Source: Octopus sinensis
Taxonomy: Eukaryota
Direction of reading: 5' to 3'
NCBI RefSeq assembly: GCF_006345805.1
Contig: NC_043010.1
Location: 64,976,001-65,040,000 of the forward strand
DNA: 64,000 nucleotides
Shown here: in pieces, positions 979 to 63,805 of the stretch
Position numbering within the stretch: the first letter of the stretch is position 1
Layout of the letters: every line of letters starts with the position of its first letter
The notes under the pieces: model-generated
Databases searched by the model: none
What the model saw: only the letters and a program-made list of their open reading frames with translations
Told to the model about the DNA's origin: nothing
Made by a program: the position numbers and the translations under genes

Positions 979-1122
979 CATATGTTTGCTTGTCACACTT
1001 CTTTCCATGCCATCCATCTTCGCAGCCATATTTACAGATTCCAGTAATTTGGTGACAATATTCCGCTCCAGAACAATGACATTCATTGATACAGTCTTTA
1101 CCATACAATTGTGGTGGACATC
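979..1122 (-). CDS. Gene 2 EGF-like exon
   Basis: caatttag|...G|gtaagt, 144 nt, phase 1-1, CPPQLYGKDCINECHCSGAEYCHQITGICKYGCEDGWHGKKCDKQTY, 8 Cys. Confidence 0.92.
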
Positions 1123-1815
1123 CTAAATTGATAACATCGAAACAGTTTCTTTGTAAATGAGCATTAAAATAAAACAGTTATTGAATATAACATTCAATCT
1201 TACAAGATCTCACATATAATCAACAAGAGATTCTATGTTTCAAGAGTATCTCTTGATATAGAATCTCTTGATGTAGCTAACAAGAGATACTATATATCAT
1301 ATTTACAATCTTAAAATTGCAGAAATTCGCGCACATATAAGAAATCAAAAATTATGCGATTCCTGTACATGTAGAAGCTACATAAGCTACAGTTGAGACA
1401 CTAGCGTATCCAGAGTGTGTGCCTCCCAGGGCGGCCCTTCCGTTTGCCACCCCGTACCTCTCAAAAGCACATATTGCCTATAGTAGACTCAAAAGTGATG
1501 CCACTTTAAAAGTACCGCTATTGGTGGACCACCCCTACCGCCCCCCAAACGTAGCTACGCTAATGAATTAAGAGCACTTTAAAGCATTATAGCCGAGAAG
1601 AGAGACTTGGCTGGCTGGGCTGGCATCCCAACATCCCCCTGAACAGAACACCAGTTTGCCGAAGGTTTATCCATTTACAGCTGAGTGAACTGGGATAACG
1701 TCAAAGAAGAATTTTACTCTAGAACTCAACGCATCACTGGTCCGAGAATTGAAACACCGATTTTACAATCATGGATGCAACACCCTAACCACCAGAACTT
1801 TCATCTCTCTCTCTA

Positions 1816-1869
<54 letters not shown>

Positions 1870-3279
1870 CATTTTCAAATGCAAATTATGTATTTAGTTG
1901 AAATTTATATTTTTATAGGGAAACTTGTTGCAACCTGTAACACAATTTCTACTGAAAGTTATTATCGGGGTAAAAAGTTTGCTCCACAATCAGATTTTTC
2001 TGGGTTCAAGTTCTGTTGCGTAGCACCTTGGATAAATGTCTTCTGCTATAACCTCGAGCCGACCAAAGTGTTCTGGTGTATTTAGCAAACGGAAACTGAA
2101 AGGAGCTTTACTTATGTAACATATGTGTGTGTGTGGGTGTGTGTTGGTCTCCCACAATATCTTGATGACCAGTGTTGGTTTACATTTGCATAATAAGTAA
2201 TGAGGGCGATTCATTCGACCAAATAAAACTTTTCAATACCGTGCCCCAGTATGGCCGCAGTTCAATGACTGAAGCAGAAATATCTGTCATCTTTCGAACT
2301 TATTTCGTATAACAATTAATACATTCTTTTATTATTTGTTTATTTATATTTATATATATAAAATCTTTATCTTAAATTGAAAATTATTTCAAACCGCACA
2401 AAAGATACAATTATTTTATTTTTTCATAAATTAAATCAATAACATGCCTTCTCTTTTAGAGGTCTGCCTTGAGTCAGTCTGAGAATTATTCTTATGCCTC
2501 TGAGCGTGTATGATAGTTTGTGTGTATGTAGATGTGTGGTTACTTACAATGCACTCATACTCACGAATACAAAATCACAAATACAGGCAGACATATGTGT
2601 ATATATACACAACCGCACAGATACACACACACACTTCGTTTATTCTTCCCTCCCCGTCTCTTATAAGCTACTCCTCATCTACATGCACTCATAGAAGCAT
2701 ACCTAAACACAGGCGTAGGAATAATTCTCAGACAGACTCAAGGGAGAAGTTTAAAACAAAGGAAATGTCATTGATGAGGTCAAGAATAGCAACGAAATCA
2801 CCTTGACACACAAGCAAACGATTGCTTAACGAACACATAAAACAAACGATCGGTTAGTTAGTTTGTTAGATATTGAACCGTTTGACTAACAATGAAAATG
2901 TCATTTTGAATCAGTACGTATGTTCACTGGGGCAATGACCCTCCCAACACAACAAGATTTGTTTCCACACACGAATTCGAATCAAGAGTGTTGCAATCCG
3001 CATACAAAAATAAAGTATTTTACAAATTACTTTTTAAAAAGTTAATTCAATGTCAAGAGGCTTAGATGAAAATAAGTATCGTTTCAGTAATAAGGTGCCT
3101 TTTGAAAATACGTTTTCTTAAAGTTTTTTCAATAAACAAATTGTTTTGATGATAAGATGTGTGATAAATTGTCGTTTGATAATAGGTTTTGGTATCACTG
3201 ATTATGCATGATATGAAATACCACAAATACATTCGAATAAACAATTGGAAATCAATTTTAATGTGAGAAATCAACATAC

Positions 3280-3423
3280 CATATAACTTAATATGATAAA
3301 CTCCAGCTTTCCCATCAATATACAAATAAGAATTCTCTACGTCACCGGTACAAATTGTTCTATTTGCGTTTGGTTTTAATTTGCATTCCATATTATATGG
3401 ATAGGTAACTTTCATTGTTGAAT
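3280..3423 (-). CDS. Gene 2 non-EGF extracellular module, exon 2
   Basis: tctctatag|...G|gtatgt, 144 nt, phase 1-1, DSTMKVTYPYNMECKLKPNANRTICTGDVENSYLYIDGKAGVYHIKLY(G). Joins the EGF exon as KLYG-CPPQLYG. Confidence 0.7.
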
Positions 3424-4512
3424 CTATAGAGAACAGAATATACAATATACGTAAAAACAGAAAATTTATATCAGCAAATGTTAAGTTTAAGTAAATATAA
3501 ATAAAACAAGTGTGTGTATATGAGTGTGCGCGTGCCTCTGCGTGTGTGTGTGTATTTATTAAAGTAAATAGTTTTGCTAGAAATAAGAGTCAAATCAACT
3601 CAATAGCCACACATACGCATATATTTATATATATGCGTGGATACGTATGTATCCATATCAGTGTATATGTCACGAGATCTACTTCACAGCCCTTAACTGC
3701 TCCTTTAAAAACTGCAAATCACCATCTTCATCATCAACATCATCATCAACTGGAAATTGAGTATATATGGTATATTTAGCACCCTGTCAGCCAGATCCAT
3801 GACTATATTTCGATACTAATTTACAGTGATTTCATTTTTCTGACATTATCAATGCACTTGAGTAAGTATGACTCTTGCAGTGTCCTTTCTGCTAAATATT
3901 TTGGGCTTTTTATGTCTGCATAGAGAAAACTATTAAATACCACCGACTATTTTTCTTAGACCTGCTCTGAAATCAGCCGACATTCGTGAAATTGATAAAT
4001 ATATTGATGAGAAGAAGAGAAGAGAGAGAGAGAGAGAGAGAGCAAATGGTAAGGAAAGGTCTACCTTTGCACTGAAATACTTGCATTATTAACATTATTT
4101 TAGGTGGCGAGCTAGCATTCATTCCGGCGCTTTCCTCTTAAATTCTGCCGAGTCCGACTTCGCTTCTAATTCTTCTGGGGTCGAAAAATAAGAACCACCC
4201 TGCACTAATTCAAGTTTGGATTTTACACAAACTTGTAAGAATCTACGTATATACCACGTTGCCAATAATTTCAGAGATTCTGCTCACTTGGAATAATCGT
4301 TATAAATTTTCTAATAAGCATTAAAAAACGTGCTCAGTCAACGTGAACCAATATTTTGATACTTTCATAAAATAATATTATATTGTCATTCAATTGATAA
4401 TGTCTGAATACAGTGTATTTAAAACGAATTAATTTCGATTTATTGTCATGAAAAATATAACTACAACAATCATTATCAACAATAAAATAGAATATGAAAT
4501 ATTATTTCTCAC

Positions 4513-4662
4513 CCGCAAAATTACTGTAAATTTCTACAGTACTAAATCTGTATGTGTTTCTGAATCGCATTAGTATTCGGGGTTTCTTTGCCTGTTTGTT
4601 ATCAGAGGAAAATAAATAGGAATACGTGCTCGACTCGTTCTTTATGAATTCATGATATTTTC
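4513..4662 (-). CDS. Gene 2 non-EGF extracellular module, exon 1
   Basis: atatacag|...G|gtgaga, 150 nt, phase 1-1, open: KYHEFIKNESSTYSYLFSSDNKQAKKPRILMRFRNTYRFSTVEIYSNFA. Confidence 0.6.
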
Positions 4663-5322
4663 CTGTATATAAAGAAATAAGTTTAGATTATTAAACTGAA
4701 AAATCGGAAAATGAATGCGAATAGCAACAAACGTGAACAAGTGTTCAGATAAGTAATGGTATATTTTAGAAACAAAAGAGATTTTTTACATTTGAATTAC
4801 GACAAATATTAACACAAAGAAACTACAAGTTTTATTCTGATTATAGAAAGAGATTACAAATATTGTAAAAATGTTCTTTTATTTTCCGAAGATGCGGCTG
4901 TGTTAGTCCTGGTGTATATACTCGAAGGAACAGCCTCTATTCAGTTTATATTTACATTGTGAAAGAAAATACAAAACAATCCTTCCATCACTACGTTATA
5001 GTGAAACATGTCGTGAGATTGTGAGATCTAATACTCTGAAGAAGGAAGGCGCTGAGCTGGGAGAAACGTTATCACGTCGAACAAAATGCCTAACAGCATT
5101 TCGTCTCCTAAAACGGTGAGGTAGGGGAATCGTAAGAATGTCGCGCACGAAGCGCTTAACGGTATTTCATCCGTTTCTGAGTTCAATTTCCATTTTACTT
5201 TTCATCCAGTTGAGGTCGTTAAGCTATCAGTTGATTACTGAGATCAATATTATCAACTTCCCAAGAAATAGTTGCACCTGTACCAGAATTTGAAACCTAT
5301 ATATTTATATAAAAAAGAAATG

Positions 5323-5545
5323 AATGTATGTATGTATGTATGTATGTATGTATGTATGTATGTATGTATGTATGTATGTATGTTTGTATGTATGTATGTG
5401 TGTATGTATGTATGTTTGTATGTATGTATGTATATATGTATGTATCTGTGTGTGTATATATGTATGTATGTATGTATATATGTATGTATGTTTATATAAA
5501 TATATATTAATATATACATACATATATGTACATACCTACATATAC
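5323..5545. repeat. (TATG)n microsatellite
   Basis: Direct reading. Similar tracts at 28832-28900 and 51221-51415. Confidence 0.95.
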
Positions 5546-5894
5546 ATGCATATATGGGTACAGGACATCAAAAAATCGTTCAACACAATGAGAAACTTTA
5601 ACATAAAAACAAAAACATAGAAAACGAATATTTTTTCGAACAACGAGAAAAACAGAGAAACGAGACATGACTACGCGTAATTGATTGGTCAGCTGCAATA
5701 TTTTGAGCTCTTTTATTTTATTTTAGACTTACTCTTCTTGTCCTGTACTTTTCCAGGTTTAGTAAGTACTTAAGAATATTGTCAATCTTGCTCACATTTT
5801 TTAATTTAACATATGGCAAGAAAATAATTTCATTTTACGCAAATAGTTACAATATATTTGAATGACTTTTGTGAATGTTATAATTTTTTCCTTT

Positions 5895-6150
5895 TGACAT
5901 TTGATAGACGTTACTCTTAGTTACTTTAGATGCAAATTGCGCGTAATTTTGTTTCCAGCTGTTATTTCAGTGCGAAAACGGACATTTGCGCCATATTTTG
6001 CTTTTTTTAAAGGCAAGAGAGCTACTGAGAAAGAAATGTACGAAGTTTATGGTGTTGAAGGCACGTCAGAATTTTTTTTTTCACCCAAAGATGACCAACG
6101 TTCTGGTCGACCTGCTGTGACGATAAAGTCCGAATAAAAACCATAATTGA
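5895..6150 (+). mobile_element. Mariner transposase N-terminal fragment
   Basis: KGKRATE..KEMYEVYG...DDQRSGRP (HTH with RSGRP motif). Confidence 0.65.
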
Positions 6151-6699
6151 ATCTGCTTGTCATATAAATGTGCGAAAGATTTCAGAGATTACATCGACCC
6201 CAGAACTCAACTGGTACTAATTTCATCGTTCCCGAATCGGACGGTAAAATGTAAAGTAAACAACAGGGAAATTAGAATTCAGAAGGTGAAGTCAAAATAA
6301 ATATTGCTAAGCAATTTTGTCCGGTGCCCTGTCGATTCTACTTGGTTACCGCCTTACAACAACAACAACAACAACAGTTGCAACAATAATAACGCTTTCA
6401 AATTTCGATAAAAAGGCCAGTAATTTCAGGAAGTTGTTAAGTCGATTACATCGAGAATAATGATGGTGATGATGATAATCTCTTTATCACTCACAAATAG
6501 TTGACAAAATCAACTAATTTGCTGAAAGGCAGCATTTTCTGCTCCCATCTTCCATGTTTGAGGGACAATGAAAAACTTGATATCGTCTTGGCCAAAAGCG
6601 AATCTCGTCCACCACATATTCTCTTCCGCTAGAATTAGCAGGTAGATTCAAACATCCCATCTTTTCCGGTCCAAGGTAAGGCATAATGATGATATTCAC

Positions 6700-7720
6700 A
6701 GTGAATTCAGATGATTACATGATCCACTTATTGTGACAGTAAGCAATGATTCCCACATAACTCTACGTATGAGCAATTCTCGGGACGAGAAGTTTCCGCG
6801 CTCTGCGCGCATCTCGAACAGAGTAGCTGACATCGAGTTTGTAGAGTTTATCTCAAATCGGCAAATCATCCCCAGTCTTTCGGGACCACCACCAAGTCAT
6901 GGATTACTTGAAACTATACATTGTTCCCAGCCCGAAATTTCTTCGACCAGCAAATTATTTCTCCATCACAAATCTTTCCTGGAGCAACAACGTGCAACTT
7001 CCATCTAACGTATTGCTCGACATGTAGAGGGTGTTGAGCACCTGATGATATTCCAGATGCCCATTGTCTTCCCTCGATTTTCGCTTGACGTAGAACTGCA
7101 GTTTTGCCAATAAACAAACTGTAGAACATAGTGACCACACCTGTTCAAAATCAAAAAAATTGTTGATCACGTAGCCTCAGTGTTGGCCACCGTATCATTC
7201 TACATGACATGCCCTCTCCCCTATATACTATGTGCAAATAGCAAATGGATCATTTGTCAACTGGAAAACATTCCCTCCACAAAAAGCGGAAGAACAGTTA
7301 TTTCAGTCTTGTGAAACGCATGGCAAAATGTTCAGGCACGCTGCCCGACCTTTTAGAGACGGCTTCCTATAAATTCTTTTATTCAACGGGTAATTGACCT
7401 CCCTGCTCGCTACGTTGCCCATCTTTTTCTACCTAGAAATAAGGACCAAACAAGACTCTTGGCAATTTAAATCGTCCACCCGTGAAATAAACCAGGTCGC
7501 TGCTGAATGTCATGGATATGAACTCTTCAGGTTCATGACTTGCACCCAAGCATTTTTTCCTGGTTTATTCCTGCTCTTGTCACAGCACCAAAGACACTGA
7601 CAAAGGTGCTGATCACCTCTATGTGCCTGATGGCTGGCTCTATATCTGTGACGTAGTCCACATTTACCTGCGCTGATCTTCTCCATCCTAGTTTCCGTGT
7701 AATTTAGTAGTGTCGCAAAA
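6700..7720 (-). mobile_element. Degenerate LINE (RTE-like) RT C-terminal fragment
   Basis: Broken frames IAKSLVWSLF, VRWKLHVV and RKTGDDL resemble the LINE C-terminal (LRWxGHV, GRPRKTW) region. Confidence 0.4.
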
Positions 7721-8429: not shown

Positions 8430-10092
8430 CTGAAAAGAACAGGAAATTTTCATTCTTGTTCATTGAAGATTTTAGAGATAACCAAAGTTGCAGCTCGATC
8501 AATTTTATTTAAAAAAAGGTATTGGAAAGATTTACTTTGGATTCAACGAAGAATTATTCCTTTCTCTCGTGGTGTATCAACAATTAGTTGTAGACCCCAG
8601 TGTTGAGGGACCACGGTTTGTTGACATGTAAGTGTAAAAGTATTTCATTTGTTTTTCGTTTGTTTGTTTTTTCCACATCTCGAATATGTAGCGGTCTTCG
8701 AAAGACATAAATTCAAAGGTTCTCACAGTTTGTTTTGGTATAAATGCTTGGTAAGGAATACTAAAAGTTGTCCGTCCACAGACTCGGACCTGAATGTCTT
8801 CTGAACACTCTTGTTAACGTGACTTCATTGATACTCAGGGTAACCCCGGGACATTGTTGCTCATATGTCTTCGTAAGAATGTCAACCAGGAATAATATTT
8901 TCTACACTGTGCAGTGTTTTCGGTTGATGAAAATTAAACATATCACCACAGAAGTCATTTATATTGTATATCTACTTTTTCTATTAAACATAGCAAGCGT
9001 ATAGTGGTGGATACCAGTCCTGGATATAAACGTGTTTGTGCAATTCCTTAACCTCAAAGATAACAAATTTCTAAGTCTTTATAGACATTCAGACTGTTTT
9101 CTGAAATTTTCTTCAAACTGACTTCATGTTCCATAGTTGAAATATTCATCTTCCTTTTCAACCTAAAATGTGATTAAATGTGACGGTACTCACTTGATAT
9201 CAAGCATATCAAATTCAATGAAGTCTAGCAAAAATACCAGTTTTAACACTCAAAGATCTGTGCAGTTTCTCATTATCAATATCATAAATTTCACACAGAA
9301 ATATAGCCTTCAATCGCATGAAGTTTGTTAATTGACTGGAAGCTCCTCATAGATTCTCAGATGAGAGGTCGGTCATTCCGCAGTATATTTGTAAGGGGAC
9401 TACCAGATATTTTTTCAGTTTGCTTAATATTAAAAAAGGATATTTCTGTGAAACTGTGAGTACACTTAAACTGCTGAAACATATATACTTAGGTGGTTAT
9501 GGACTTCAAGGAGACCCAAACATGGCCGCCATCTACTAATCGGTAAATGACTTACCGAATAAAAGACAATATATACCATATTTAAATTGAAATATTGTTT
9601 CATATAATTATAAGTTCAATAATCTTCTTATTGGATTTGCGTCTTTAGTTACAATTTGAGTATTGCTAAAGCTTTACATATGTACGTATTCATATTTAAA
9701 CTTCGCGCATAATGTATGGGAGTTAGTGAACACTACATAGATGCCGTACTCTGTGTAAGGAAGACCCCTAAAAGACGTATCATGTTACAAAAGACACCAT
9801 ATTTCAAAGTATCAAAGTATACAAACGAAATCTTTAACGGGGTTTCTTTTTGAGGAAAGATGACAACTCTGTAGCGATTACTAACGCAAATACACTCATA
9901 TGTGATACTGATAGCGTTTACAATATTGAGCATGTTCAAGCGCAAAATTGAAGTTTGTATTCCTTGTGCGACGCTTTTTTACACCAGCAATTAGATGATA
10001 TGTAATTTGTATACACATCTCTGGCTGGCAATAACAAGTCGTTTTGGAAGTTTTGGAATAACAAGTCGTTTCGCGACTTACGAATACAGGCC

Positions 10093-10167
<75 letters not shown>

Positions 10168-11190: not shown

Positions 11191-12089
11191 TCACTTTAAA
11201 ATAAAGCCTGTATATTATAAATAATATATATTGGGCATTTCAGTTGATTTATAGGCAAAATATTCCAAATTTAAATTGTGGTACTTTCTGAGCAAAATTT
11301 GATACTTTGATACTGGCAGTTTCATCAAAAGAAGTTTGACAGATCTGATTGAATGAAGAAATTTACAGAGTGCGATGAAAGGAGAGCGGAACATTTCTTG
11401 AAAACCACACAGAACTCCCAGGTTAGTTAACCAGAGGCAAAATAATGTTGTGCCAGGAAGAAGCATCAACGGGAAATATTGTCGACAACTACAAACTAAT
11501 AACCTGTCTGTCCATTATGTGAAAGCTGCTGAGAGGAATACTATATATAAATCAAAGGTAGGACAAAAAGAACATAACAGGTGGAATCGAAGAAAACACA
11601 ACATGCCAAAAATAGACGATAACATAACATGAGTGATACCATAGACAATAACATAAAAAGATGTAAACAGGACGGAAACAAGATAGACGGGCCATTCGCA
11701 GCAAAGTTCCTCATCAGTCGGTTTCTTAAAGGTCATTATAGATTCGAACCGCTTTAATACCGAGACTATTCGAATCCAACAAGGTGCCAGGGACTTAAAG
11801 GAAAAGCATTAAGCCTCCAGGAAAATCAAACGAATATATACAACAACAAAACAAGAACGAAAACGAAGAGAAAGCAAACTTTATGCACATACAAAGCAGA
11901 GAAAACGATGGTACATTACAATACGAAAATATAAATAAAAGAGAGGGTCTCTCTACTATCGGACGAATGTAACATTATAAAAAATGCAATTGCAACAGAA
12001 ACAGAATTATACATTTAAAATGGACAGGCGCCTTTCAGCTATACAACAAAATAAAAACATAGTTGGGACAAACAAGGACAGACAAAGGG

Positions 12090-12380
12090 ATTAAGTCGAT
12101 TACATCGACCCCAGTGCGAAACTGGTACTTTATTTATCAACCCCGAAAGGATGAAAGGCAAAGTCGACCTCCGCGGAATTTGAACTCAGAACGTAGCGGC
12201 AGATGAAATACCGCTAAGCATTTCGCCCGACGTGCTAACGATTCTGCCAGTTCGCCGCCTTACAAGGATAGTTTTTTTAAAATTATTCCGACGCTCTAAC
12301 GATTCTGCCAGTTCGCCGCCTTAAAAGGTTAGGTTTTTATTAATTATTCCGACGTTCTAACGATTCTGCCAGTTTCTCGT
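12090..12380 (-). mobile_element. SINE family A with a tandemly reiterated 5' head
   Basis: Reverse complement of the family A consensus; the 60-bp unit ctaacgattctgccagttcgccgcctt... is repeated about 2.5 times. Confidence 0.8.
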
Positions 12381-13546: not shown

Positions 13547-13698
13547 GCTTTTGACAATATGGCTTTTTAATCCAGGTAAGCATCCATTTTCACATTTACT
13601 AAGGATTTGGAACTGGCAGTCACTAAGGTGTTTACAGTTACATTGGTATTTCTGGTCTTTCCCAAACAAGCCAACATCACCATAACCTTTACAACTGT
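13547..13698 (-). pseudogene. Gene 2 N-terminal EGF-like exon with 1-bp deletion
   Basis: ttttcag|...C|gtaagt, 152 nt (153 would keep frame), SCKGYGDVGLFGKDQKYQCNCKHLSDCQFQILSKCENGCLPG. The terminal TAT TGT CAA AAG (YCQK) is one base out of frame. Confidence 0.75.
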
Positions 13699-14553
13699 CT
13701 GAAAACAAATAATATATCAACATTATTAAAACATTTCTTTGAATAATTCTCTTAATAAATAATATTGATTCGTTAATATTAGATAGTATTTAATTTATAA
13801 AAAAAGTTATATATTAAGATAGCGTTATGATTTATACACTGTAAAGAGCATTAGCAATCTCAGTGATGAGAAATAAACTAATCCGTATATTAACATCGGT
13901 TGGCAAACAGTTTGCTTCTACGCTGCTCCATTGTCTGCCCTGAACATTAATATATTATATATCGCATAATTTCGGTGTAAGACATACAATACAAATGATT
14001 AGTGATTAAAACAACATATTCTCAAGTTTATTTACGCATATATTTTCTTCACATCTATTGACACATTTTTAATGCCATTGTTGTTATTTAGCCATCACTC
14101 AGCATTCATTCCGTGGACCAATGATCAAAGATTTTACACCCATGTCTATCTTGTTTCCACTTTATCCAGTATGTTTCTTTCTCAGAACAATAGGGTATGA
14201 TTTTAGCAGGCCAACCAATGAGAAAATGGGTGTCTTTAACCATTGCAGACTTTCAGGTTTTTCATTTTTATCATATATCTTGAATTATTGAAGTTTGTGA
14301 GTCCTTCCATTTGGTATATTTTCTCATTGAAAAGCCGCTGGGAGATACCTAGTAGTACTGGGATAATTTAAAGATATAACATTCATAGAAGAGAATAATA
14401 CACGCATATAGTTTTAAAGTTTTGTTGAGAACTTGACATTGCAGAAAACAACTTGTCAAATTTTACTGCGTGGAGAATAAATCTTTCACAACGTTCAAAA
14501 CTGAGGTCCATTATAAATTTTATAATCTAAAATACACACTTATATTCATAAGC

Positions 14554-14613
<60 letters not shown>

Positions 14614-14643
14614 ATATATATATTTAATTTATTTTATAGAAGG

Positions 14644-14694
14644 AGCTTCTACAGGACTAGAACTGTTTCATTCAAAAGAAATCATCAGGAAGCT
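14644..14694 (-). ncRNA. Type I hammerhead ribozyme (Penelope pLTR-associated)
   Basis: Minus strand: AGCTTC-CTGATGA-TTTC tttt GAAT-GAAA-CAG ttctagtc CTG-TA-GAAGCT. Stem I 6 bp, intact core, stem III closed, only a U-U mismatch at the base of stem II. Confidence 0.75.
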
Positions 14695-14889
14695 AGGTGA
14701 CAAGAGTAGTTTTGGCATTTATACATTTAGGCAGGTTTCAAAGGGGTGGTGGTGGGGGACTTTTTGGGGTAGACATGGCGCAAACTATCATTCTTAGGGG
14801 AGTGGTCAAAGGAATCGGTGGTAAAGTAGATAAAAGAATAAATAAAAGAATAAATAGAAAAATAGAGTTTTAGGTAAATAAGGAGACTC

Positions 14890-15330
14890 TCACTTATACA
14901 TATACATATATATATATATGTACATACACACACACATATATATATATATATATACACACACATGTACATATACACATACACACACACACACATACACATA
15001 TGTATACATATACATACATACATATACACACATATACATACATACACATATACATATATACACATACACATACGTACACATACACACATACACCCATATA
15101 CACATGTACATATGTACCCGTATACATGTATCTACGTACACGCCCATACCCATACTCATACATACACTTATATATGTCTACACACATATATATATAAAAG
15201 GGGATATACACCCCATACACACGCGCTCCCATATCCATATATATATATATATATATATATACATACACATATATATACACACACCCATATACACACATAT
15301 ATATACATACATACACATACATACCTATCC

Positions 15331-15387
<57 letters not shown>

Positions 15388-15860
15388 TATATATACACAC
15401 ACTCACATACATATGCATATACATGCACACACATACACACACATTTCTTCCCTTATTTTAATTTTATTTTAATTTTTTACTTTTGTTTTTATTTTTATTT
15501 TTATCTTGACCTCGGCCAGCCAGCCCGGCACTGAAGTGATGTCGTCCCAAGGGAACTAGTCTAAAGAGTCCATTTATTGCCCCTCTGCCTTCCTTTCTAT
15601 CTTTCTACTCACTGATACGAACACAAACACTCACACACGCACACACACTCACACGTACACTCATACACATTCACACACGCACATGTTATATTCATACATA
15701 CATACATACATCTACATACATGCACGTATATACACATACGTACACGTACCTACAAATTCATATCTACACGCATACACATACATACATCTATACACCCACA
15801 GAAGACTAGTCCATACATATACACAAATAAATATATATACATATACATATACACATACAT

Positions 15861-15901
<41 letters not shown>

Positions 15902-16890
15902 CACATATATACATATATATACTCATATATATATATATATACATATATATATACATACACATATATACATATATACACACATACATACACGTACGCGCAT
16001 ACCTACATATACATACACACATATATACTTACACCAGTCATATGCATACCTACATACCCATACATCCATATATCTATACATATACATACACGTATATATA
16101 CACACAAGCACATACTAATACACACGCACACACATCTAGCTACATATATAAAAAAGAAACCCAACAAGTCCATACATGTACACACATACACATACATACA
16201 TGCATATACACATATATACCCATACACATATACACATACATACACATACACATATATATATATACACACATGTATATATATACATATATACACATACATA
16301 TACATACACACATGCATACACATACACACACACACGCACATCTATATATACACATAAGTACATACATGCATAAATGTATACATATGTTTATACATATGCA
16401 CACACATACACACACACGCGCGCATCCTTATATACATAAATACATACATGCATACTCAAATAATAAATAATAAATAATAAATGTATATACATGCAGTTAC
16501 CCATTATACAGACGGATACATACATATAAACATACACATATATACCTATTTACACATATGTATATATACATACATGCATACCCATACACATAACTCTACA
16601 TACCTACATATACATAAACACACAAGCGTACACACATATATATATATACATATATACATATATATACATATATATATATATATATATCCACACACATACA
16701 TATACACATATACATACACACACACATACATATACACGCGCGTAAATACACGCACTCACATACATGCGTATATTCCTACTAACACCCATACGTTTCTATA
16801 CATATATACAAGTGTACACATACAATATGTGAATAGTCTTAGGAGAAAATATATATACATGAAACAAATGGAAAACAAGAGATACACCAT
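14890..16890. repeat. About 2 kb of cryptically simple (TA/CA) purine-pyrimidine sequence
   Basis: Interspersed TA, CA and TACA motifs; source of many spurious Y/I/H/T and V/C/M ORFs. Confidence 0.95.
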
Positions 16891-16948
16891 AGAGTGACCC
16901 TTCATCAGTTATCGGCCGTTTCTCTCTCTCTTTCTCACTCTATCTATC

Positions 16949-16990
<42 letters not shown>

Positions 16991-17189
16991 TAGCCGACAA
17001 CTGATGAAGGGTCGCTCTTTATGTTGTTTGTCTTGTTTTCCATTTGTTTCTTTTGTTGTCCGCAAAAAAGTTCATATTCCGTGTATTCGTATTTCGGATA
17101 TTTTGTTGTTTACGTTTTGTGACGTCCTGTGCCCACATATGTATATATATATATACATGTAAGTATTTATATATACGTATGTATATATG

Positions 17190-17246
<57 letters not shown>

Positions 17247-17366
17247 AGTATTTATATATACGTATGTATATATGCATCATATATATATATATACATATTA
17301 TTTATATTATAAGATTGAACACCACGCATCCTTTTCCAACTAAGTTTTATCTATCTATCTATATAC

Positions 17367-17416
<50 letters not shown>

Positions 17417-18880: not shown

Positions 18881-19277
18881 GCAAAATATGAGAGTAAGAG
18901 CTGGATCATGCTATTCTATTAAATGATATAAAATAACACTAATACTACTAAACTTACCAGGTTTTCTGAAGCAAGTACTTTTACAATAATCAAGTTCCCT
19001 CTTATTATCTGCGACGCAATCTCCTTTGGTGATATCACATTGGGCTTTAATATAAATAAAAATAGAATTTTTATTTTTAAGAAACCATCAAGTGAGATAC
19101 CTTAGAAATCTAGTAGAATATGAAAATATCATATTCATGTCTTTCTCGGCAATAAAAATGACATAAATCAAAACATTTGTTAGTGAAAATAAAAATGAAG
19201 GGAAAGCTTTTCAGCGAAAATACAGACCGAAACTTTATTGCCGGGATCGTAATAATGTTATAATATTAAAAGGGTAA

Positions 19278-24284: not shown

Positions 24285-24384
24285 NNNNNNNNNNNNNNNN
24301 NNNNNNNNNNNNNNNNNNNNNNNNNNNNNNNNNNNNNNNNNNNNNNNNNNNNNNNNNNNNNNNNNNNNNNNNNNNNNNNNNNNN
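24285..24384. other. Assembly gap (100 N, true size unknown)
   Basis: Run of exactly 100 n. Confidence 1.
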
Positions 24385-29784: not shown

Positions 29785-29907
29785 CTTCGAAATAGTAAAA
29801 CTTCGGTGTATATACGTTGAATGATACATAGTCTTGATATGTGAAATTTGGATTGTTCCAAATGACTCATTATTCTCTTCATCTGGCCAATACTGCATAC
29901 ACTTCAT
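29785..29907 (-). CDS. PTP domain exon 5
   Basis: tttgcag|...AAG|gtaagg, 123 nt, MKCMQYWPDEENNESFGTIQISHIKTMYHSTYIHRSFTISK, with the KCxxYWP motif. It lies inside track ORF 29752..30180. Confidence 0.95.
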
Positions 29908-34882: not shown

Positions 34883-34907
34883 CTTGACAAGCAATATAAC
34901 GCTGGTT
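34883..34907 (-). CDS. PTP domain micro-exon 3
   Basis: gtttcag|AAC CAG CGT TAT ATT GCT TGT CAA G|gtatgt, 25 nt, NQRYIACQ(G), the YIAxQGP motif. Phase 0-1 fits both neighbours. Confidence 0.8.
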
Positions 34908-36005: not shown

Positions 36006-36079
36006 ATTGATGAAATTTGCATTGATGTAATCTGAGGAAGATATCTCGTCAGGCTGAAGTTTCACACGTGAATGGTCGT
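36006..36079 (-). CDS. PTP domain exon 2
   Basis: atttcag|...AAT|gtatat, 74 nt, (Y)DHSRVKLQPDEISSSDYINANFIN, with the D..RV.L and DYINA motifs. Confidence 0.95.
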
Positions 36080-37000: not shown

Positions 37001-37088
37001 ATGGAAGTATAAAGTTATGCAAATTCTTCCTTGTATTCTCAGGTTTAGTTGCTTCAGTATAAGGCATTGGTAAGGTCTGTGGCAACCT
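37001..37088 (-). CDS. PTP domain exon 1 (wedge / pTyr-recognition loop)
   Basis: tttgtag|...T|gtaaat, 88 nt, phase 0-1, RLPQTLPMPYTEATKPENTRKNLHNFILP(Y). KNLH stands at the KNRY position. Confidence 0.88.
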
Positions 37089-38349: not shown

Positions 38350-38489
38350 CAAGAATTCATCATTATATGGTTCCACTTCCTGTTTCTTCTGAGCAACATA
38401 ATTCAGTAGATATGAGTGAGACGAGGAACTGGCTTCGTTGATGTATACACCTTCGCTTTCCTTCATCTGTATATCCTCATAGATATGTG
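38350..38489 (-). CDS. Juxtamembrane exon 2
   Basis: ttcatag|...TTG|gtcagt, 140 nt, phase 1-0, AHIYEDIQMKESEGVYINEASSSSHSYLLNYVAQKKQEVEPYNDEFL. It ends in the EF motif that typically precedes RPTP D1. Confidence 0.8.
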
Positions 38490-40699: not shown

Positions 40700-40785
40700 C
40701 TGTATCATCAGGAATGGCTTGTGAATACATATTTTCTGATGTTTTGCGAATTCTCTTACCACGTTTTGCAATTTGCTTTTTTTTC
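40700..40785 (-). CDS. Juxtamembrane exon 1 (basic stop-transfer segment)
   Basis: tatatag|...G|gtaggt, 86 nt, phase 2-1, matching the TM exon; (R)KKKQIAKRGKRIRKTSENMYSQAIPDDT. Confidence 0.8.
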
Positions 40786-45343: not shown

Positions 45344-45437
45344 CGACACCAAATTGCAGCTGCCATTCCCATGGCTAGAATGACAAACAGAAGCAATGGA
45401 ACTAATACAGACACTAGGATATTCTTGCTTGTTTTCT
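45344..45437 (-). CDS. Transmembrane exon
   Basis: cattccag|...CG|gtatgt, 94 nt, phase 1-2, EKTSKNILVSVLVPLLLFVILAMGMAAAIWCR with a hydrophobic run of about 23 aa. Confidence 0.88.
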
Positions 45438-48059: not shown

Positions 48060-49480
48060 TAAGGATCTATCCAACTACTCGCCTGGGCAACTTTGTTATC
48101 TTGGTAATATGCACATGGAATGTTGCATCATTATTAATTTGGATTCCTAGATAATGCACCGATTCTAACTCCGGAATTGCACTATCGCCTGGTCCTATGT
48201 ATTCCGATTGTAGTCTCTTTATGGGCCAATAATGCTTGAAACTTATGAGCATTGAGCTGCATGTTATTTTTAGCAGCCCATTTTTATATTGCCTGCAAGT
48301 TGTTTTGCAGCTTTTGCATGTTATCATGGCCCTGGACCACCTGAAATACTTTTGTATTATCGGCGTAACTGGTGTGAGCTGCTGACTGTACGACAATGGG
48401 GGGGAGGCATATCTGAGGGAGCCACTACAAACATTGGTGGTCCCAGCACAGTTCTTTGAGGAACTCCACTGCGAATTGATACCACCCCAGAGAAAGCATC
48501 ATTGACTACAACAACCTGACTTCTGTCTTTTAAAAAGTCGTACAGCCACTCTCCCAGTTTTCTAGTGATAACAAGATCAAGTAGTCTGTGATATATCATC
48601 CCATGATTAGCGTTGTCAAAGGCTTTAGGAAAGTTGGGATATATCACATCGGCTTTTGAGTGGTTTTCAGTACGCAATAATAATATTATAGTAGTTGTGT
48701 GAGGTATGTTTTTCAGCAAGTTATTCTCTTCCAAGGAGGTGATCAATCTCTTTCTGACAATGCGTTCCATGACCTTATGCGATGTAAGAGAGATAGGCCT
48801 GTGATTTTTAGCACTTGCTTTCCTTCCTTCATTATATTATAGCCTCTTTTAACAGTCTGGTAGGTTTTCCACATGCAAGGATACTCTGAGAAATTATCTG
48901 CTATGATTTGCGAAAGCTTTCTTACATATTTTCAGGAGAACATCCAGAAATCCATCAGGACCAGTTGCTGAGTTTGAGCTCATCTCAACAATAGCTGTAG
49001 TATTACATCTATCTCTATTGTATCGATGTAATCGATGGCTGGCTTTTCATATTGGTCTGTAAGCTGGCTTACTTTCCTGTTTCCCAGTGGAGAGGTGAAG
49101 ACATTGTGATATTGCTTATTTAGTACTTCACTTATCTTCTTGGAGTCTGCTGTTAGCAAGCCGACTTCTCTAAAAAATGGGCCTATCTTCTAGTGCACTG
49201 TGGCAGATTCTTTCGCTAACTTGTAGAAGGCTTTAGAATTTATTTTTATATTTTCTTCCGCAATGTTTTCTCATCCTATCCTTTCATTTTCATGGGTGAC
49301 TCTGGGTTTATTTTCGATTTCTAATAGTCTCTCTTTGAGGAGGCATTTTTCGCTGTCATTAAGATTTATTTTATATCTCATAAGAACTTTCCTGTCTCGC
49401 GAATGATGCTTATGTATGTGGTCGCTCTCTTCTCTGGGACAAATTGAGTGCAAATGATTCACATTACTGACATAAATTCT
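48060..49480 (-). mobile_element. CR1/L2-like LINE RT fragment
   Basis: MERIVRKRL..LEENNLL, DVIYPNFPKAFD, DFLKDRSQVVVVN, SGVPQRTVLGP and LGIQINND. Confidence 0.85.
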
Positions 49481-51282
49481 TTAAGTTTCATATCAGTGCC
49501 TTGTATAGAGTGACATTTAGGTCGGTTTTGCTGGATAACCCATTTTTCAATTGACTTCCAGTCAGACATTTTAAAGTTCAGATTAAATAGAGTTTGGGTA
49601 CTGTTTGTGTGAAATACAATATTAGATGTCAGTTCTAGTGAACCGGGAACCATGTGATTCAGAAGTGTGCTTCTTACCACACAGCCACTGCTGCGTTCAT
49701 ATATGCGTGTGCGTGTGTGTGTGTATCTGTTTGGGTACCTGTGTTGCTCGCCTACCATCGTTCTTGAACTAAACCTGTCTCTTTTTCTGTCTGCCTCTCT
49801 CTCTCTCTGTCACACACATATGTATATATATATAATATAGATATATATATATATATTATATATATTATATATATATATATATATATAATATAGTCAATTG
49901 ATTGAATATACAATTGAAATAGCAAGTAAAAAACGAAAAAAGGAAAGAAATTAGAAAGAAATCGAACGTGAAGTCTGGCACAAAAACATTAGTTTGACGT
50001 TCAGTGTAAGGGGAGAGTTTAACCTTTCGAGTATAGCTCTTCGTCGGAAAGGTGAATGGGAGAGTCCAGAAGCTTAAGAAAAAGTCGCCAATGTCATAGA
50101 GTTACATTTCTGAAGTCACTTCTGAAGTACATCGATATACATGTATATATGTATATATGTTTACATGTATGTGTGTGTATATGTACACATATATACATGC
50201 ATACACATATACATGTTCTTACACACAATCATATATATATATATAAACGCATACGCAGACACACACACACACATATACACGTAAATTCACCACAATATAA
50301 CTATTGACAGATGTATGTATACATATTCATTTACATATACATACGTAAATACATACAAACACCCATGTGTATATAAGCATGTCATAGACTCTCTCGTTGT
50401 TACATGACGTATGAGGGTTCGGCAAGAAATTGCCGAACAGCCAGACGGATGATTTGATTACAGTGATGAAATATGTTTGTAGGCATTACGTCAGTTCCTC
50501 CATCAAATCGACATTACCTGTGCAGGTGCAACTAGTGCCACATGTCAGATGAGGAAATGATTGCAGAGCAAAGTGAAATGAAGTGCTTTGCTCAAGAACA
50601 CAAACGCAACACACAAGCTGACAATCAAACAAGCGGTCTCCTCGCAATCGTGAGTATATATATATATATATATAATCAAGTAAAGGTAATAAACATCATT
50701 AAGGGATCATAAATCCAATGAAAGTACTGGTGAGTTATTCTTAATATATATATATATATATGTATTGAGCTTTCTCGGTTGGACTACTGTCCGTGCAATA
50801 TCTATATTCCTTCCTGCCCTTGTTAAATCTTATGTCCCTGCCGTAAGGCTATATTTGCACACACGCCAGCTTAATTTAATTCGTCATTAGTCGAACGACA
50901 CCTTTTGTTATATCTTGTTTTATATTTGTGTAACATTTCTGTTTTTTTTTCATCCTTGTTTCGAATACATTCACTGCTTTCTTCCAAGGAATCTAATGCT
51001 CTTAGCTTAGTTTTCTTTGAAACTGGCCAGATTAGAGCAATCTCGAGTATAACCAGCCGAAATTGTAAAGATAATCTGGAACTCGACTGAGGATAGAAAA
51101 CTTCGAATGATCCGTCCTTGTTTTCCTTGTATCGTCTGTCTGGATATTTTGTTTTCGTTTTTTTTATATTTCAACTAAATGTCTGGATGTTTTGCGTTCT
51201 TGTCCCATTCTTGTATTTTATGTATGTATGTATGTATGTATGTATGTATGTATATATGTATGTATGTATTTATGTATGTATG

Positions 51283-52790: not shown

Positions 52791-52925
52791 CTTCTTGACA
52801 ATCGAAGCCTAAATATCCATCAGAACATCCACCTTCACATGATCCATTTACTCTGTTGCAGCTTTCGTTGTCGATACAATGACATGTTCGTTTACAATTT
52901 CGCCCAAATCTACCAACTTCACATT
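52791..52925 (-). CDS. EGF-like exon B
   Basis: ttttcag|...G|gtataa, 135 nt, phase 1-1, ECEVGRFGRNCKRTCHCIDNESCNRVNGSCEGGCSDGYLGFDCQE. Confidence 0.92.
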
Positions 52926-53177: not shown

Positions 53178-53306
53178 CTTTTTGGCAGTTGAATCCGGTG
53201 TATCCATTATCGCATTCACCTGGGCACTCTCCATTTATGTGGTTACATGCTACGGAACAATGACAGGACTCATTGCAATTGTGACCAAAGCTACCATCGG
53301 GACATT
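53178..53306 (-). CDS. EGF-like exon A
   Basis: atttcag|...G|gttatt, 129 nt, phase 1-1, ECPDGSFGHNCNESCHCSVACNHINGECPGECDNGYTGFNCQK. Confidence 0.92.
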
Positions 53307-57899: not shown

Positions 57900-58560
57900 A
57901 CGTGTTACATTCTGAGTAACAGTTGCTGAAGTCTTTTTAAATCAACACTCCTTGGTCGGATGATCCTTTGGGCCTTCCGTCGTCTCCAACTAGATCCCAC
58001 CACCCACCCCATTTCCCCAACACACCCCTGTCGTCCTTTAAATGCGCCGTAACCTACGCGATCTACTAGTCTGTAGCACCCTCCTCTCTTACCTCCCAAC
58101 CCCATTCGGATGCTTCCCTTACTCTAGATTCTGCTGCTACACTTGCCCTTTCATCAGCAACACCACCTCCCTCACTGGATTCAACCAGCAAACCCTCCAC
58201 ATTAGAAACTCCCCTTGCACTTCTTCAAGTCTTATCTATTGCATTAGAGATAATCTCTGCAATAAACTCTACGTTGGTCAGACGGACTGCTGCCTGGCCG
58301 ACCGGTTCACGGAACATCTACGAGATATTCGGCTACGCACGAACATTCCCGTCGCCCGTCATTTCCGTTTGGCCAACCACTTCACCTCTTATATCTCCAT
58401 TTTTGGCCTCGCCTTGCACCACAGATCCACACTCTCGACTCCGCCTGGAACAGCGTTATATTTTCAGTCAACAAACATAAACTCCCTTCGTACTCAGCAT
58501 AACCCCCTCCTCTTAACGACTGCCTCTAAACCCTTTTCTTTTATTTTATTTTATCTTCTC
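57900..58560 (+). mobile_element. Penelope-like GIY-YIG endonuclease domain
   Basis: CTSSSLIYCIRDNLCNKLYVGQTDCCLADRFTEHLRDIR..PVARHF. Confidence 0.85.
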
Positions 58561-58859
58561 TCATAACCATTTACTTCTTTGCACTGTTACCTATTTTACG
58601 ATTTTTTATTGTTTTTTATCGTTTTTTCTGTCGAATTAAAAAAATTTATTGTATTATTTTTTATAATTTTTAAAATTTCTATTTCATTAATTTAATTTTG
58701 TTTAAATTTTAATTTTTTTACTTTTTATTCTTTACTTTTTATTTTTTATCTTATATCTGTTATTTTTGAATTTTTAAAAATTTTTTTAATTTTTTCATCT
58801 TGTAACCTTCTCCATTTTTGCCCCTTTTTTACCGACCTTCTTTATCATATTTTATTTTA

Positions 58860-60439: not shown

Positions 60440-60442
<3 letters not shown>

Positions 60443-60517
<75 letters not shown>

Positions 60518-60829: not shown

Positions 60830-60880
<51 letters not shown>

Positions 60881-61145: not shown

Positions 61146-61153
<8 letters not shown>

Positions 61154-61725
61154 TTGGGTCATTCCATAAATAATGCGGTTTTTTTCAATCGCATGAACTA
61201 AAAGTTGAAATAGGATGGGATAAACTACCTGCATCAACCTGCTATGAAAGCAGATAGTAATTTTCCCTCTTCCTTAATCTTAGGGCAAGTTTTGAAGGGT
61301 GAAGCTCGATTTAAACAGTTATTTTTTCAAAGCTATAATGGAAGTGACAAATGAGCACGTTCGGCATAGTTTGTTTTATTATGAGTTCAACAAAGGCAAC
61401 AAAGAAACGGAAAGTGCGAGGGATATTAATGCAGTGTTTGGGGATTGGACAATAAGTGTAAGCCAGTATCAACGGCGGTTCCAGAAGTTCCGAGCCGGAA
61501 ACAACAACCTAGAAGACGAGCCACATCTTGGAAGATCTGTAGAGCTCGAGAAAGATGTCTTGCAAACTCTGGCGGAACAAAATCCCATCGTAACTGTTGA
61601 GGAACTAGTACAGCAGCTTGGTTTTGGTCATTCAAGATGGAAAAGTATTGTAGAAAATTTTAGATCAAAAAAGTACTTTATCTTAATCTTTTAAAAAATG
61701 AGGGTTAAAAAACCGCATTATTTAT
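61154..61725 (+). mobile_element. Internally deleted mariner
   Basis: TIR ataaataatgcggtttttt / aaaaaaccgcattatttat; MEVTNEHVRHSLFYYEFNKG...FQKFRAGNNNLEDEPHLGRS. Confidence 0.85.
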
Positions 61726-63300
61726 TTTCTTTTACTCTCTTACTGTTTTCAGTCAGGGGCTAGGGCCGTACTGAAGCACCGACTTTCACAAGTTTCGGGT
61801 CTCCCTTCGGTATTATGCTTGACGGCAAAACGAGTTGGATGGAACTGCAGCGCTTGATGTTTCCCAGTGGAGAGAAGACACCCGAGAATTGTTTATTTAG
61901 TACTTCCCTTATCCTCTTTGGGTCTGCAGTTAACAAATCGACTTCAGATTGTTGACCTATCCTGTAGTGCACTGTGGCAGATTCTTTGAATAGTTGGTTT
62001 GGAAAAATACCTGCTCAATTCCGTCATATTGTCTGAGAAAATTGTTGGTGTTATCTTCACGTTATACATTAGAGCTACATTTTTGGTAAAACAGAATTCT
62101 AACCTCCCTCTCTCTTCCTTTCTCTGTATATACATATATATGTAGATATGTGAAGTATTATCACTGTTAGAAACAGTAATAATGAGGTGGCTAGCAAGAC
62201 TTCTACATAAACAGTTATAATATTTGAAAAAAGAAGGGTAAAAATACCGCTTGCAAAAAATTAAAGTGAAAGCTTAAGAAAACCCACCAATTCTGCGATA
62301 AATACACACACGAGCAATTTAATGAACATTTTAAAAATAGGCCTGCCTTCAGGAGGGAAATTGAAGGCAGTTTTATTACATATTCCAACATCAATTGATT
62401 TCATGCTGTGCATGATAAAACATGCCCGGCAATCCTCATTTGAAGGCAGTATTAACATCTATTTCTAAAATATTTAAAGTATTTAACATATTTTTCTAAA
62501 ATATTCATTACGTCAACTCGTGTGCGTTTCTAGCTTTTGGGCAATGAAATGTTACCGAAGTATTTATCACGAATATAGTAGTTACATTACTACCACCCTT
62601 TATCACTATACACCTGTGATAAGTTGTAAGTATGGAAATAGTGGCATTTATTCTGTTCCTGACATTTTTAATAAGTCTATTGTTGCCAGGTCATAGTTCA
62701 GATTGTTTCTATATTACGTGTTTTGCACATTTCTTGCGTTATCATATCAATACATTAATGCGTGTACCTCTACGGACACAGGAAAACTAGTGATTTATTA
62801 ATTACTGTTTTCCTGTTTCAGTAGAACTAAATTTGTTTAAATATTCCATGGCTACTGAATACCTGCAACAAATGACGGTGAAAAAAAAAATCTAGATTTA
62901 AACAATTTAACGTTTCGTCTGATTTTTATCACAACACATGGATGTGAGATGTGATCACGTGACGAACGCCGCAGTTTTGTGACTTTGTGCAGTATATCCA
63001 CGTACATTAAGTAAGAATTATATATATGTGTGTGTGTGTGTATGTTTCCGAATGATTATGTAACACACACACACGCACGCGCACACATACAGATATATAC
63101 ATAGTCATTACGAGTCAAATATTTCCTGATTTTTTTACGAAGATTCTTGTGAATGAATGCTTGAAAAGCATAATTGTTATAAACCGGTGTAGTCCTCATT
63201 TCCACTCGCACATTATTAAAATACCAGGAAATATTTAGAAAGAGACAAATTCACAGGCTGAGACATATTTTTTAAAATATAATGTAGACTTAAATTATAC

Positions 63301-63435
63301 CTTGTTGACAATTGTCACCGTCATATCCAGCAGCACACCCATCTGGACATGTCCCATTTCGTCTGTCGCACTTTTTGTTGTCAACACAGTGACATATATC
63401 TTTACAATTTACACCAAATTTATCTCCTTCACATT
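63301..63435 (-). CDS. EGF-like (MEGF/laminin-type 8-Cys) exon B'
   Basis: tttcag|...G|gtataa, 135 nt, phase 1-1, ECEGDKFGVNCKDICHCVDNKKCDRRNGTCPDGCAAGYDGDNCQQ. Confidence 0.9.
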
Positions 63436-63676
63436 CTGAAAATATTGGTATAAACAAATTATATTAGATATCATTTACTGAATATAATAAAAGGTATATC
63501 TATAATACTTTTCTACTTCAGAAATATAATTAAGATATTGTATGCCTGTAAACAAACATTAAACATTTGTTTCGCTTAACGTAATATGTTATCATAAACA
63601 AGATTGAACAGGTAGAGACATTAATTGAAATATAAAAAATAATTTAATAATTTTGGAATAAAGTATAGAAAATTAC

Positions 63677-63805
63677 CTTCTTGACAGCTGGATCCGCTGT
63701 ATCCTGCATCACAATCACCTGGACATGATCCATGTACGTGGTTACATGGTAGGGAACAATGACAATGCTTTTTGCAACCCTCACCAAAGCTGAATCTGGA
63801 GTATT
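63677..63805 (-). pseudogene. EGF-like exon A' with damaged splice acceptor (probable decayed or skipped exon)
   Basis: 129 nt, EYSRFSFGEGCKKHCHCSLPCNHVHGSCPGDCDAGYSGSSCQE, donor G|gtaatt. Same length as the paralogous exon 53178-53306, but the acceptor reads cgg instead of cag, the first Cys is Tyr, and (TA)n replaces the pyrimidine tract. Confidence 0.7.

Follow-up and report, generated by a model that had tools for sequence, protein, structure and literature searches.

An Octopus array of receptor-type tyrosine phosphatase genes with the catalytic exons of one copy most likely hidden by an assembly gap

The SudRes1 schistosome-resistance region of the snail Biomphalaria sudanica is a cluster of receptor-type protein tyrosine phosphatases (RPTPs) with MEGF repeats, a galactose-binding domain (GBD) and tandem protein tyrosine phosphatase (PTP) domains (PMC12297450, Nat Commun 2025). 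Here we analyzed a stretch of 64,000 nucleotides from Octopus sinensis (assembly GCF_006345805.1, contig NC_043010.1, positions 64,976,001 to 65,040,000), referred to below as the window. A sequence-only reading of it had described two tandem minus-strand genes, gene 1 and gene 2, and had drawn a parallel with snail parasite-resistance loci. That parallel was borne out, as SudRes1 has the matching architecture. We consider it highly probable that the window is a piece of an Octopus (vulgaris-complex) array of RPTPs, in which the catalytic exons of gene 1 are hidden by an assembly gap.

SudRes1 and the octopus family share MEGF-type EGFs, a galactose-binding-like domain, a single transmembrane helix and tandem intracellular PTPs. 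In both, a single chromosome carries a cluster of many paralogues, in which some copies are partial and some differ by presence or absence. The snail homologues matched by the octopus protein included Bulinus, Physella and Lymnaea proteins with PTP domains, whereas those of Biomphalaria were matched only as GBD/MEGF proteins. The identity between octopus and gastropod members was only about 25–35%. In the octopus genes, a Cys-rich segment at the N-terminus and a beta module of about 97 amino acids are found in addition to the elements of SudRes1. SudRes1 also has adjacent antistasin-like genes, and none were seen in the octopus window. Finally, SudRes1 is tied to schistosome resistance, whereas the octopus array is known here from its sequence.

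Two other groups of receptors resemble parts of the octopus proteins. Vertebrate type IIb RPTPs (PTPRT, PTPRM and PTPRK) are likewise single-pass proteins with tandem classical PTP domains, of which the first (D1) is active and the second (D2) inactive. Unlike them, the octopus protein P0040 contained no MAM, Ig or FN3 domain in a Pfam scan, and its ectodomain consists of F5/8-type-C and EGF domains; the annotation name "T-like" reflects the phosphatase domains only. MEGF10, MEGF11, Draper and CED-1 share the 8-Cys EGF repeat C-x-C...G-x-C...C-x2-G-x2-G-x2-C, and annotation gives the names MEGF6/10/11 or draper to some members of the family. These engulfment receptors have tails of the NPxY or immunoreceptor tyrosine-based activation motif type, whereas the cytoplasmic part of the octopus family consists of PTP domains. 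In contrast to that group, no EMI domain was detected.

The family was identified with a 41-amino-acid exon of gene 1 carrying the KCMQYWP motif, which was searched against 1.84 billion representative proteins. The strong matches were CAI9733301.1 (100% identity) and CAI9733299.1 (73%), both O. vulgaris proteins annotated as "receptor-type tyrosine-protein phosphatase T-like". Word-indexed searches with spliced exons had returned fragments of at most 40% identity or nothing, and missed the 100%-identical proteins. On the O. vulgaris chromosome OX597827.1 (84.7 Mb, GCA_951406725.2), the array comprises the accessions CAI9733294 to CAI9733313, with at least seven loci and with intact, partial and inverted copies. 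These annotated genes ("RPTP T-like / mu-like") belong to the same family as the window genes and partly to the same locus, and intron sequence of the window is 98.6% identical to OX597827.1 next to CAI9733306. Counterparts in O. sinensis are LOC115219456, XP_036365016.1 ("MEGF6") and XP_029644740.2 ("protein draper"). Most of the 91 homologues found (E <= 1e-20) were molluscan (chiton, abalone, oysters, clams and freshwater snails), together with the brachiopod Lingula. Many of them combine a GBD with a PTP, and others have only part of the architecture. Both window genes thus belong to an already annotated, mollusc-wide family, and their assignment to it is secure. We found no paper on this GBD–MEGF phosphatase family in cephalopods in the literature.

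In the fullest paralogue models, a signal peptide is followed by a small Cys-rich segment and then by an atypical EGF, the all-beta module of about 97 residues and an EGF. Next come an F5/8-type-C domain, a variable number of 8-Cys MEGF-type EGFs, a transmembrane helix, a catalytic D1 and a degenerate D2. The complete paralogue P0040 contains F5_F8_type_C_2, six EGF repeats, a transmembrane helix and two Y_phosphatase domains. Its D1 covers profile positions 1-234 with WPD and VHCSAGVGRTG, and its degenerate D2 reads HCRKNFHKSG. The F5/8-type-C domain was also present in P0039 and P0092, so the galactose-binding-like domain that had been named for such genes is found in complete members (Pfam F5_F8_type_C_2). 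No such domain was found in the window, and for gene 1 it is expected upstream of the window. The public octopus models at this locus are fragmentary or chimeric.

In the window, gene 1 would be represented by its 3' part, namely EGF exons A2 and B2, the transmembrane and juxtamembrane exons and the first half of D1. Its phosphatase exons are as follows.

37001..37088, minus strand: D1 exon 1, RLPQTLPMPYTEATKPENTRKNLHNFILP, in which the phosphotyrosine-recognition motif KNRY reads KNLH
36006..36079, minus strand: D1 exon 2, YDHSRVKL...DYINANFIN
34883..34907, minus strand: D1 mini-exon of 25 nt, NQRYIACQ, also found in P0023
33195..33292, minus strand: D1 exon, GPTQSTLTDFWRMIWQLKCNTIIALNDTITAGK
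29785..29907, minus strand: D1 exon with the KCxxYWP motif, MKCMQYWPDEENNESFG...FTISK, the last gene 1 exon in the window

After splicing, four of these exons (36079 to 29785) matched PF00102 (Y_phosphatase) with an E value of 5.8e-31 (108 bits), covering profile positions 14-123 of 234; D1 begins in the fifth exon (37088-37001). The classical PTP motifs DYINANF, DFWRMIWQ and KCMQYWP were found. Exon 29785..29907 was 100% identical to CAI9733301.1, including the ten-residue tail of that model produced by intron read-through. The splice sites of the transmembrane, juxtamembrane and PTP exons were canonical and their phases mutually consistent. Gene 1 had been read as EGF repeats followed by a transmembrane segment and a PTP domain, and the in-frame splicing and the PF00102 match agreed with this.

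The half-domain had also been called divergent, and this did not hold. The first half of the domain is well conserved and not very divergent. KNLH in place of the KNRY loop is its single notable change, and by it motif 1 departs from the classical form. KNLH was common to P0023, P0045 (CAI9733313) and P0047, whereas KNRY was kept in P0024 and P0040. Because it is present in CAI9733301, CAI9733313 and the close homologue P0047, whose D1 is otherwise complete, KNLH marks a conserved subtype and not random decay.

The second half of the domain was absent from the window. No exon for the WPD loop, the HCX5R loop or the Q-loop was found on either strand with regular expressions or with tblastn using PTP1B and a consensus, nor by hmmscan of all downstream open segments. 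The C-terminal halves of close paralogues detected no second PTP half in the window by tblastn. Pfam scans, which covered the minus-strand open segments and the spliced PTP exons, returned transposon domains and the first half of D1; they gave no second PTP half and no lectin domain. A segment at 735-670 resembled a WPD exon when probed with PTP1B (E 0.67). It was rejected, having no hidden Markov model support and no counterpart in any paralogue.

Left of the last gene 1 exon, the window contains an assembly gap.

24285..24384, no strand: assembly gap of 100 N; collinearity with O. vulgaris stops exactly at its right edge

Both flanks of the gap are repeat-rich. No exon or reading frame runs across 24285-24384, and no exon is near the gap. 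For comparison, we used the O. vulgaris DNA around CAI9733306.1 (OX597827.1:74126329-74169726, GCA_951406725.2), referred to as L001. Its positions 1-6899 aligned to window positions 31261-24385 with 98.64% identity, and the alignment ended at the first N. Beyond this point, L001 continues with intact and canonically spliced catalytic exons. The WPD exon (8770-8949; TDVYLQ...WPDHDIPQ...VVVHC) lies 1.9 kb past the gap point, and the P-loop exon (9884-10024; HC|SAGVGRTG) lies 3.0 kb past it. The Q-loop exon (11764-11913) and then D2 exons follow, up to 33395 (26.5 kb past the gap point). The catalytic motifs read WPDHD, VHCSAGVGRTG and VQKRIQLEF. On the other side, dispersed short repeats were all that window positions 1-24284 had in common with the 36.5 kb of L001 that follow the gap point.

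The comparison argues that the two sides of the gap are not continuous: either at least 36.5 kb of unassembled sequence lies between them, or they are misjoined. That gene 1 and gene 2 are adjacent is therefore a statement of scaffolding only. Of the two tandem minus-strand genes first described, the paralogy and the common orientation stand, whereas their head-to-tail adjacency exists only across the gap. Since the collinear L001 carries the catalytic exons just past the gap point, the place of the missing catalytic half is that of the gap. The gene 1 exons for the WPD loop, Cys-P-loop, Q-loop and D2 would not be deleted but would lie within the unassembled stretch marked by the 100 N. Most likely, the phosphatase domain looks broken because of the assembly gap, and the pseudogenization suspected for it was not upheld.

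The O. vulgaris annotation has its own breaks at this locus. Within L001 1-10024 (about 74.160-74.170 Mb), no gene is annotated over the KCxxYWP and WPD exons or over most of the P-loop exon. CAI9733306.1 (251 aa) begins at a Met inside the P-loop exon, and the O. vulgaris gene is split into a 522-aa model and this 251-aa model.

The remaining exons of gene 1 in the window are as follows.

53178..53306, minus strand: EGF exon A2, 8 Cys, 129 nt, phase 1-1
52791..52925, minus strand: EGF exon B2, 8 Cys, 135 nt, phase 1-1
45344..45437, minus strand: transmembrane exon, EKTSKNILVSVLVPLLLFVILAMGMAAAIWCR; acceptor phase 1, donor phase 2
40700..40785, minus strand: juxtamembrane exon 1, RKKKQIAKRGKRIRKTSENMYSQAIPDDT
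38350..38489, minus strand: juxtamembrane exon 2, AHIYEDIQMKESEGVYINEASSSS...NDEFL

A2 was identical to one EGF repeat of O. sinensis XP_036365016.1, and B2 was 100% identical to repeats of P0041 and P0043. In the transmembrane exon, about 23 hydrophobic residues precede RKKK. The reading frame continues from B2 into this exon and on into the juxtamembrane exon. The transmembrane exon was 100% identical to P0045 and 94% to P0023. The gene 1 exons were 93-100% identical to CAI9733301 and CAI9733313.

Gene 2 lies left of the gap. In the window it would consist of 5' ectodomain exons and continue beyond the left edge.

18958..19044, minus strand: Cys-rich N-terminal exon, AQCDITKGDCVADNKRELDYCKSTCFRKP; 87 nt, phase 1-1
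13547..13698, minus strand: atypical EGF exon C; 152 nt, where paralogues imply 153
4513..4662, minus strand: exon 1 of the non-EGF module, KYHEFIKNESS...FRNTYRFSTVEIYSNFA; 150 nt, phase 1-1, no Cys
3280..3423, minus strand: exon 2 of the non-EGF module, DSTMKVTYPYNMECKLKPNANRTICTGDVENSYLYIDGKAGVYHIKLY; 144 nt, phase 1-1
979..1122, minus strand: EGF exon D, 8 Cys, 144 nt, phase 1-1

These five exons matched the N-terminal parts of octopus paralogues at 75-92% identity, and the best match of gene 2 to any fetched model did not exceed 92%. In the paralogues, the exons after EGF D encode the galactose-binding domain, which for gene 2 falls past the left window edge; gene 2 thus runs off the window. 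The order EGF, non-EGF module, EGF with continuation off the window, as first read, agrees with this exon mapping.

Exon C had the appearance of a decaying EGF, and this was rejected: the exon is an atypical but conserved EGF that carries a single frameshift. At or beside an A5 run (at about 13575), the loss of 1 nt shifts the frame before the conserved ...PYCQKR, and alignment with paralogues gave two high-scoring segment pairs in different frames. The frameshift may be real, because the gene 1 exons have no indels, which suggests that indels in this sequence are real differences filtered by selection.

A signal peptide had been assigned to gene 2, and this was not confirmed. The paralogues P0041, P0043, P0046 and P0050 begin with the signal peptide MSAVNVIVFCCGILLILSAKQIST. 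A homology search with MSAVNVIVFCCGILLILSAKQIST and a splice-aware scan for a gene 2 signal-peptide exon gave no match and no candidate with a usable donor. MLIYYLFS (13723-13700), the sole Met-hydrophobic stretch adjoining an EGF exon, results from translating the polypyrimidine tract of the intron upstream of exon C. For gene 2, the signal-peptide exon may be in the unassembled part.

The non-EGF module of about 97 amino acids had no Pfam match. Its two exons together were predicted to form an all-beta fold (predicted local distance difference test score, 72). Foldseek with this model found no significant match in the PDB (best E 0.05), and CBM32 or galactose-binding-like folds reached a template modeling score of only about 0.4. 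Within gene 2, a TA/CA microsatellite of about 3 kb (at about 14500-17400) lies in the intron that separates the Cys-rich exon from EGF C, and it gives rise to many spurious long open reading frames (ORFs).

At the right end of the window lie two further EGF exons and an exon of a divergent neighbor.

63677..63805, minus strand: decayed EGF exon A1, with Tyr for the first Cys, GG in place of the AG acceptor and a (TA)n microsatellite directly adjoining
63301..63435, minus strand: EGF exon B1, 8 Cys, 135 nt, phase 1-1, intact splice sites
62532..62624, plus strand: second coding exon of the divergent paralogue CAI9733311/12 (P0132/P0044), 31 of 31 residues identical by tblastn

The gene of the CAI9733311/12 type starts inside the window left of 62.5 kb, and its remainder lies right of the window. 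The plus-strand exon means that the array is not purely head-to-tail but includes a head-to-head junction. The head-to-tail cluster described earlier is broken by this opposite-strand paralogue. In the O. vulgaris gene table, an opposite-strand 522-aa Y_phosphatase gene ends 71 bp from the start of the P0132 gene. It also follows from this exon that A1 and B1 are inside the first intron of the neighbor, and they would be relic or orphan EGF exons within this divergently oriented gene. Residues 6-43 of A1 were 100% identical to the intact copy in CAI9733313.1 (P0045) of O. vulgaris. A1 is probably not spliced, and its lost Cys, altered acceptor and abutting (TA)n agree with the exon decay noticed earlier. 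B1, which shares 96-98% identity with EGF repeats of P0024/P0130, lies beyond the start of the opposite-strand neighbor and so may be an orphan exon.

EGF-like exons were sought in all six frames of the window, and exon boundaries were then set from the DNA. Six were found, all on the minus strand, and no EGF exon was found on the plus strand. The exons read earlier were present where they had been placed, and the limits of that reading, 979 and 63805, are the outer ends of exons D and A1. B1, A2, B2 and D have 8 Cys in the MEGF pattern, a length divisible by 3, phase 1-1, a polypyrimidine tract with an AG acceptor, and a GT donor. The proposal that all EGF exons share this 8-Cys phase 1-1 form applies to these four; A1 has lost its first Cys, and C is atypical and 152 nt long. 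Five EGF exons thus show the 8-Cys pattern, which in A1 is reduced to a 7-Cys remnant; the sixth, exon C, is atypical. The identity of the window EGF exons to EGF repeats of family members ranged from 56 to 100%, and Pfam gave only sub-threshold matches (EGF_STAB1-2 and EGF_laminin). Every ectodomain exon in the window (Cys-rich, both module exons and the EGF exons) is symmetric, phase 1-1, so EGF repeats can be gained, lost or skipped without breaking the frame.

A cephalopod origin of the locus, which had been read from the DNA, is supported by the 93-100% identity of window exons to Octopus vulgaris proteins and by the 6.9-kb intron segment that is 98.6% identical to OX597827.1. The window DNA is AT-rich (GC 0.28-0.42 in 2-kb windows), and TA/CA microsatellites and transposon fragments are abundant across it. 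A mariner-type remnant lies at about 41820-42700 on the minus strand (Transposase_1, E 5.6e-10; HTH_48, E 3.9e-07; 40.9-43.1 kb chunk). A second HTH_48 ORF, also a mariner-type remnant, is at 61299-61694 on the plus strand (E 2.6e-13). RVT_1 fragments below the Pfam cut-off, at about 48000-48800 and about 27600-28600 on the minus strand, are insertions in gene 1 introns that resemble long interspersed nuclear elements. The 174-aa ORF at 58042-58566 on the plus strand had a weak match to GIY-YIG nucleases (E 0.002). It adjoins a 1.2-kb CA/TA-rich block at 58.8-60.0 kb and may be a remnant of a Penelope-like element. The 168-aa ORF at 43709-44215 on the plus strand is CxxC-rich (CHACGQF...CSACSNGLC), had no Pfam match and is probably transposon-derived. 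Dispersed repeats resembling short interspersed nuclear elements paired with 71-87% identity (24086-24252 with 50982-51149, and 25063-25357 with 39823-40117), and one at 12092-12265 matched several places in L001. Such repeats flank the gap and recur through the locus.

Several points weigh against an array with the catalytic exons of gene 1 behind the gap. Gene 1 has no identified 5' end and possibly lacks 5' exons of its own, because the divergent neighbor starts left of 62.5 kb. For gene 2, exon C is frameshifted as assembled, and there is no signal-peptide exon. The O. vulgaris models of the same subtype, CAI9733300, 301 and 313, end at or skip the catalytic exons. The window is not identical to OX597827.1: between 24385 and 31261, we counted 38 substitutions and 38 indel events in 6.9 kb, 27 of the 38 indels being deletions in the window and many lying outside homopolymers. 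The window thus represents a different assembly, haplotype, sister species or very recent duplicate. The content of the gap is therefore inferred and not seen. Ligand binding and signaling are likewise read from domain content.

Gene 1 might instead be truly truncated, with a deletion or rearrangement at the gap having removed the catalytic half of D1 and all of D2, so that it would be a pseudogene or a phosphatase-dead decoy with gene 2 truly next to it. The window indeed has no WPD, P-loop or D2 exon on either strand, and its KNRY motif has already become KNLH. The model CAI9733301 reads into the intron and stops after the KCxxYWP exon, and in CAI9733300/313 splicing bypasses the catalytic exons, which suggests that these exons are unused or lost in some copies of the subtype. 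However, the homology to OX597827.1 stops at the very first N and not at a breakpoint defined by sequence, and in O. vulgaris the intact exons are only 1.9 and 3.0 kb further on. In addition, all upstream exon boundaries are intact (12 of 12), the KNLH homologue P0047, from another source, has a complete D1, and the public models are visibly fragmentary, P0038 starting inside the P-loop exon. We regard true truncation as very unlikely. Still less tenable is the reading of all exons from 63.8 kb to 1 kb as one very long transcript, for which their common strand and the uniform phase 1-1 of the ectodomain exons would speak. Every homologue has the order Cys-rich segment, EGF C, module, EGF D, GBD, EGFs, transmembrane segment and PTP, whereas in the window the N-terminal-type exons come after the transmembrane and PTP exons, and an unresolved gap of at least 36.5 kb separates the two exon sets. 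That gene 2 exons might belong to the gene 1 transcript, which the sequence-only reading had named as a refutation, is already contradicted by this order, and we give the single transcript next to no probability.

A different doubt concerns function. The locus could have arisen neutrally, as an ordinary RPTP of development or adhesion was copied by segmental duplication, and most window copies would then be dying fragments that have no recognition function. A1 is dead, A1 and B1 lie within an intron of an opposite-strand gene, and the region is transposon-dense. Gene 2 is frameshifted, lacks a signal-peptide exon and has no annotated protein at 100%, and gene 1 has no identifiable 5' end next to the neighbor starting left of 62.5 kb. 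Against this, the intact exons of gene 1 (about 1.1 kb) carry 0 indels where about 6 would be expected from the intronic 38 per 6.9 kb, which suggests purifying selection. Moreover, the family and its architecture are conserved across molluscs, and the same family is associated with parasite resistance in a snail (PMC12297450). Neutral duplication is possible, but we think it doubtful. At the other extreme, the octopus array could be the cephalopod counterpart of SudRes1, a set of copy-number-variable, allelically diverse lectin/EGF pattern-recognition receptors signaling via tyrosine phosphatase, with the KNLH D1 functionally re-tuned. In this full form we hold the proposal to be improbable.

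The array as read here, with its partial, inverted and decayed copies, fits birth-and-death evolution, as had been proposed. The case is made by recent duplicate pairs (298/299 with 311/312, and 300/301 with 313), by partial and inverted copies, by the dead A1 exon and by the gene 2 frameshift. As to mechanism, the ectodomain would recognize a glycan or protein ligand through its lectin-like domain and EGF repeats, clustering that depends on this ligand would alter D1 activity toward phosphotyrosine substrates, and D2 would be regulatory. An immune role as variable recognition receptors with high allelic diversity may be suggested from these comparisons.

For annotation, one mollusc-wide family is concealed behind the automatic names "RPTP T-like", "MEGF6" and "draper", and the public octopus gene models at the locus are split or chimeric. 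The apparent loss of the catalytic center in gene 1 is best explained as an effect of the assembly gap and not as biology. If the recognition role is true, the architecture of lectin domain, MEGF repeats and tandem PTPs would have been tandemly diversified for non-self recognition in gastropods and cephalopods, and the array would be a concrete candidate locus for cephalopod immunology.

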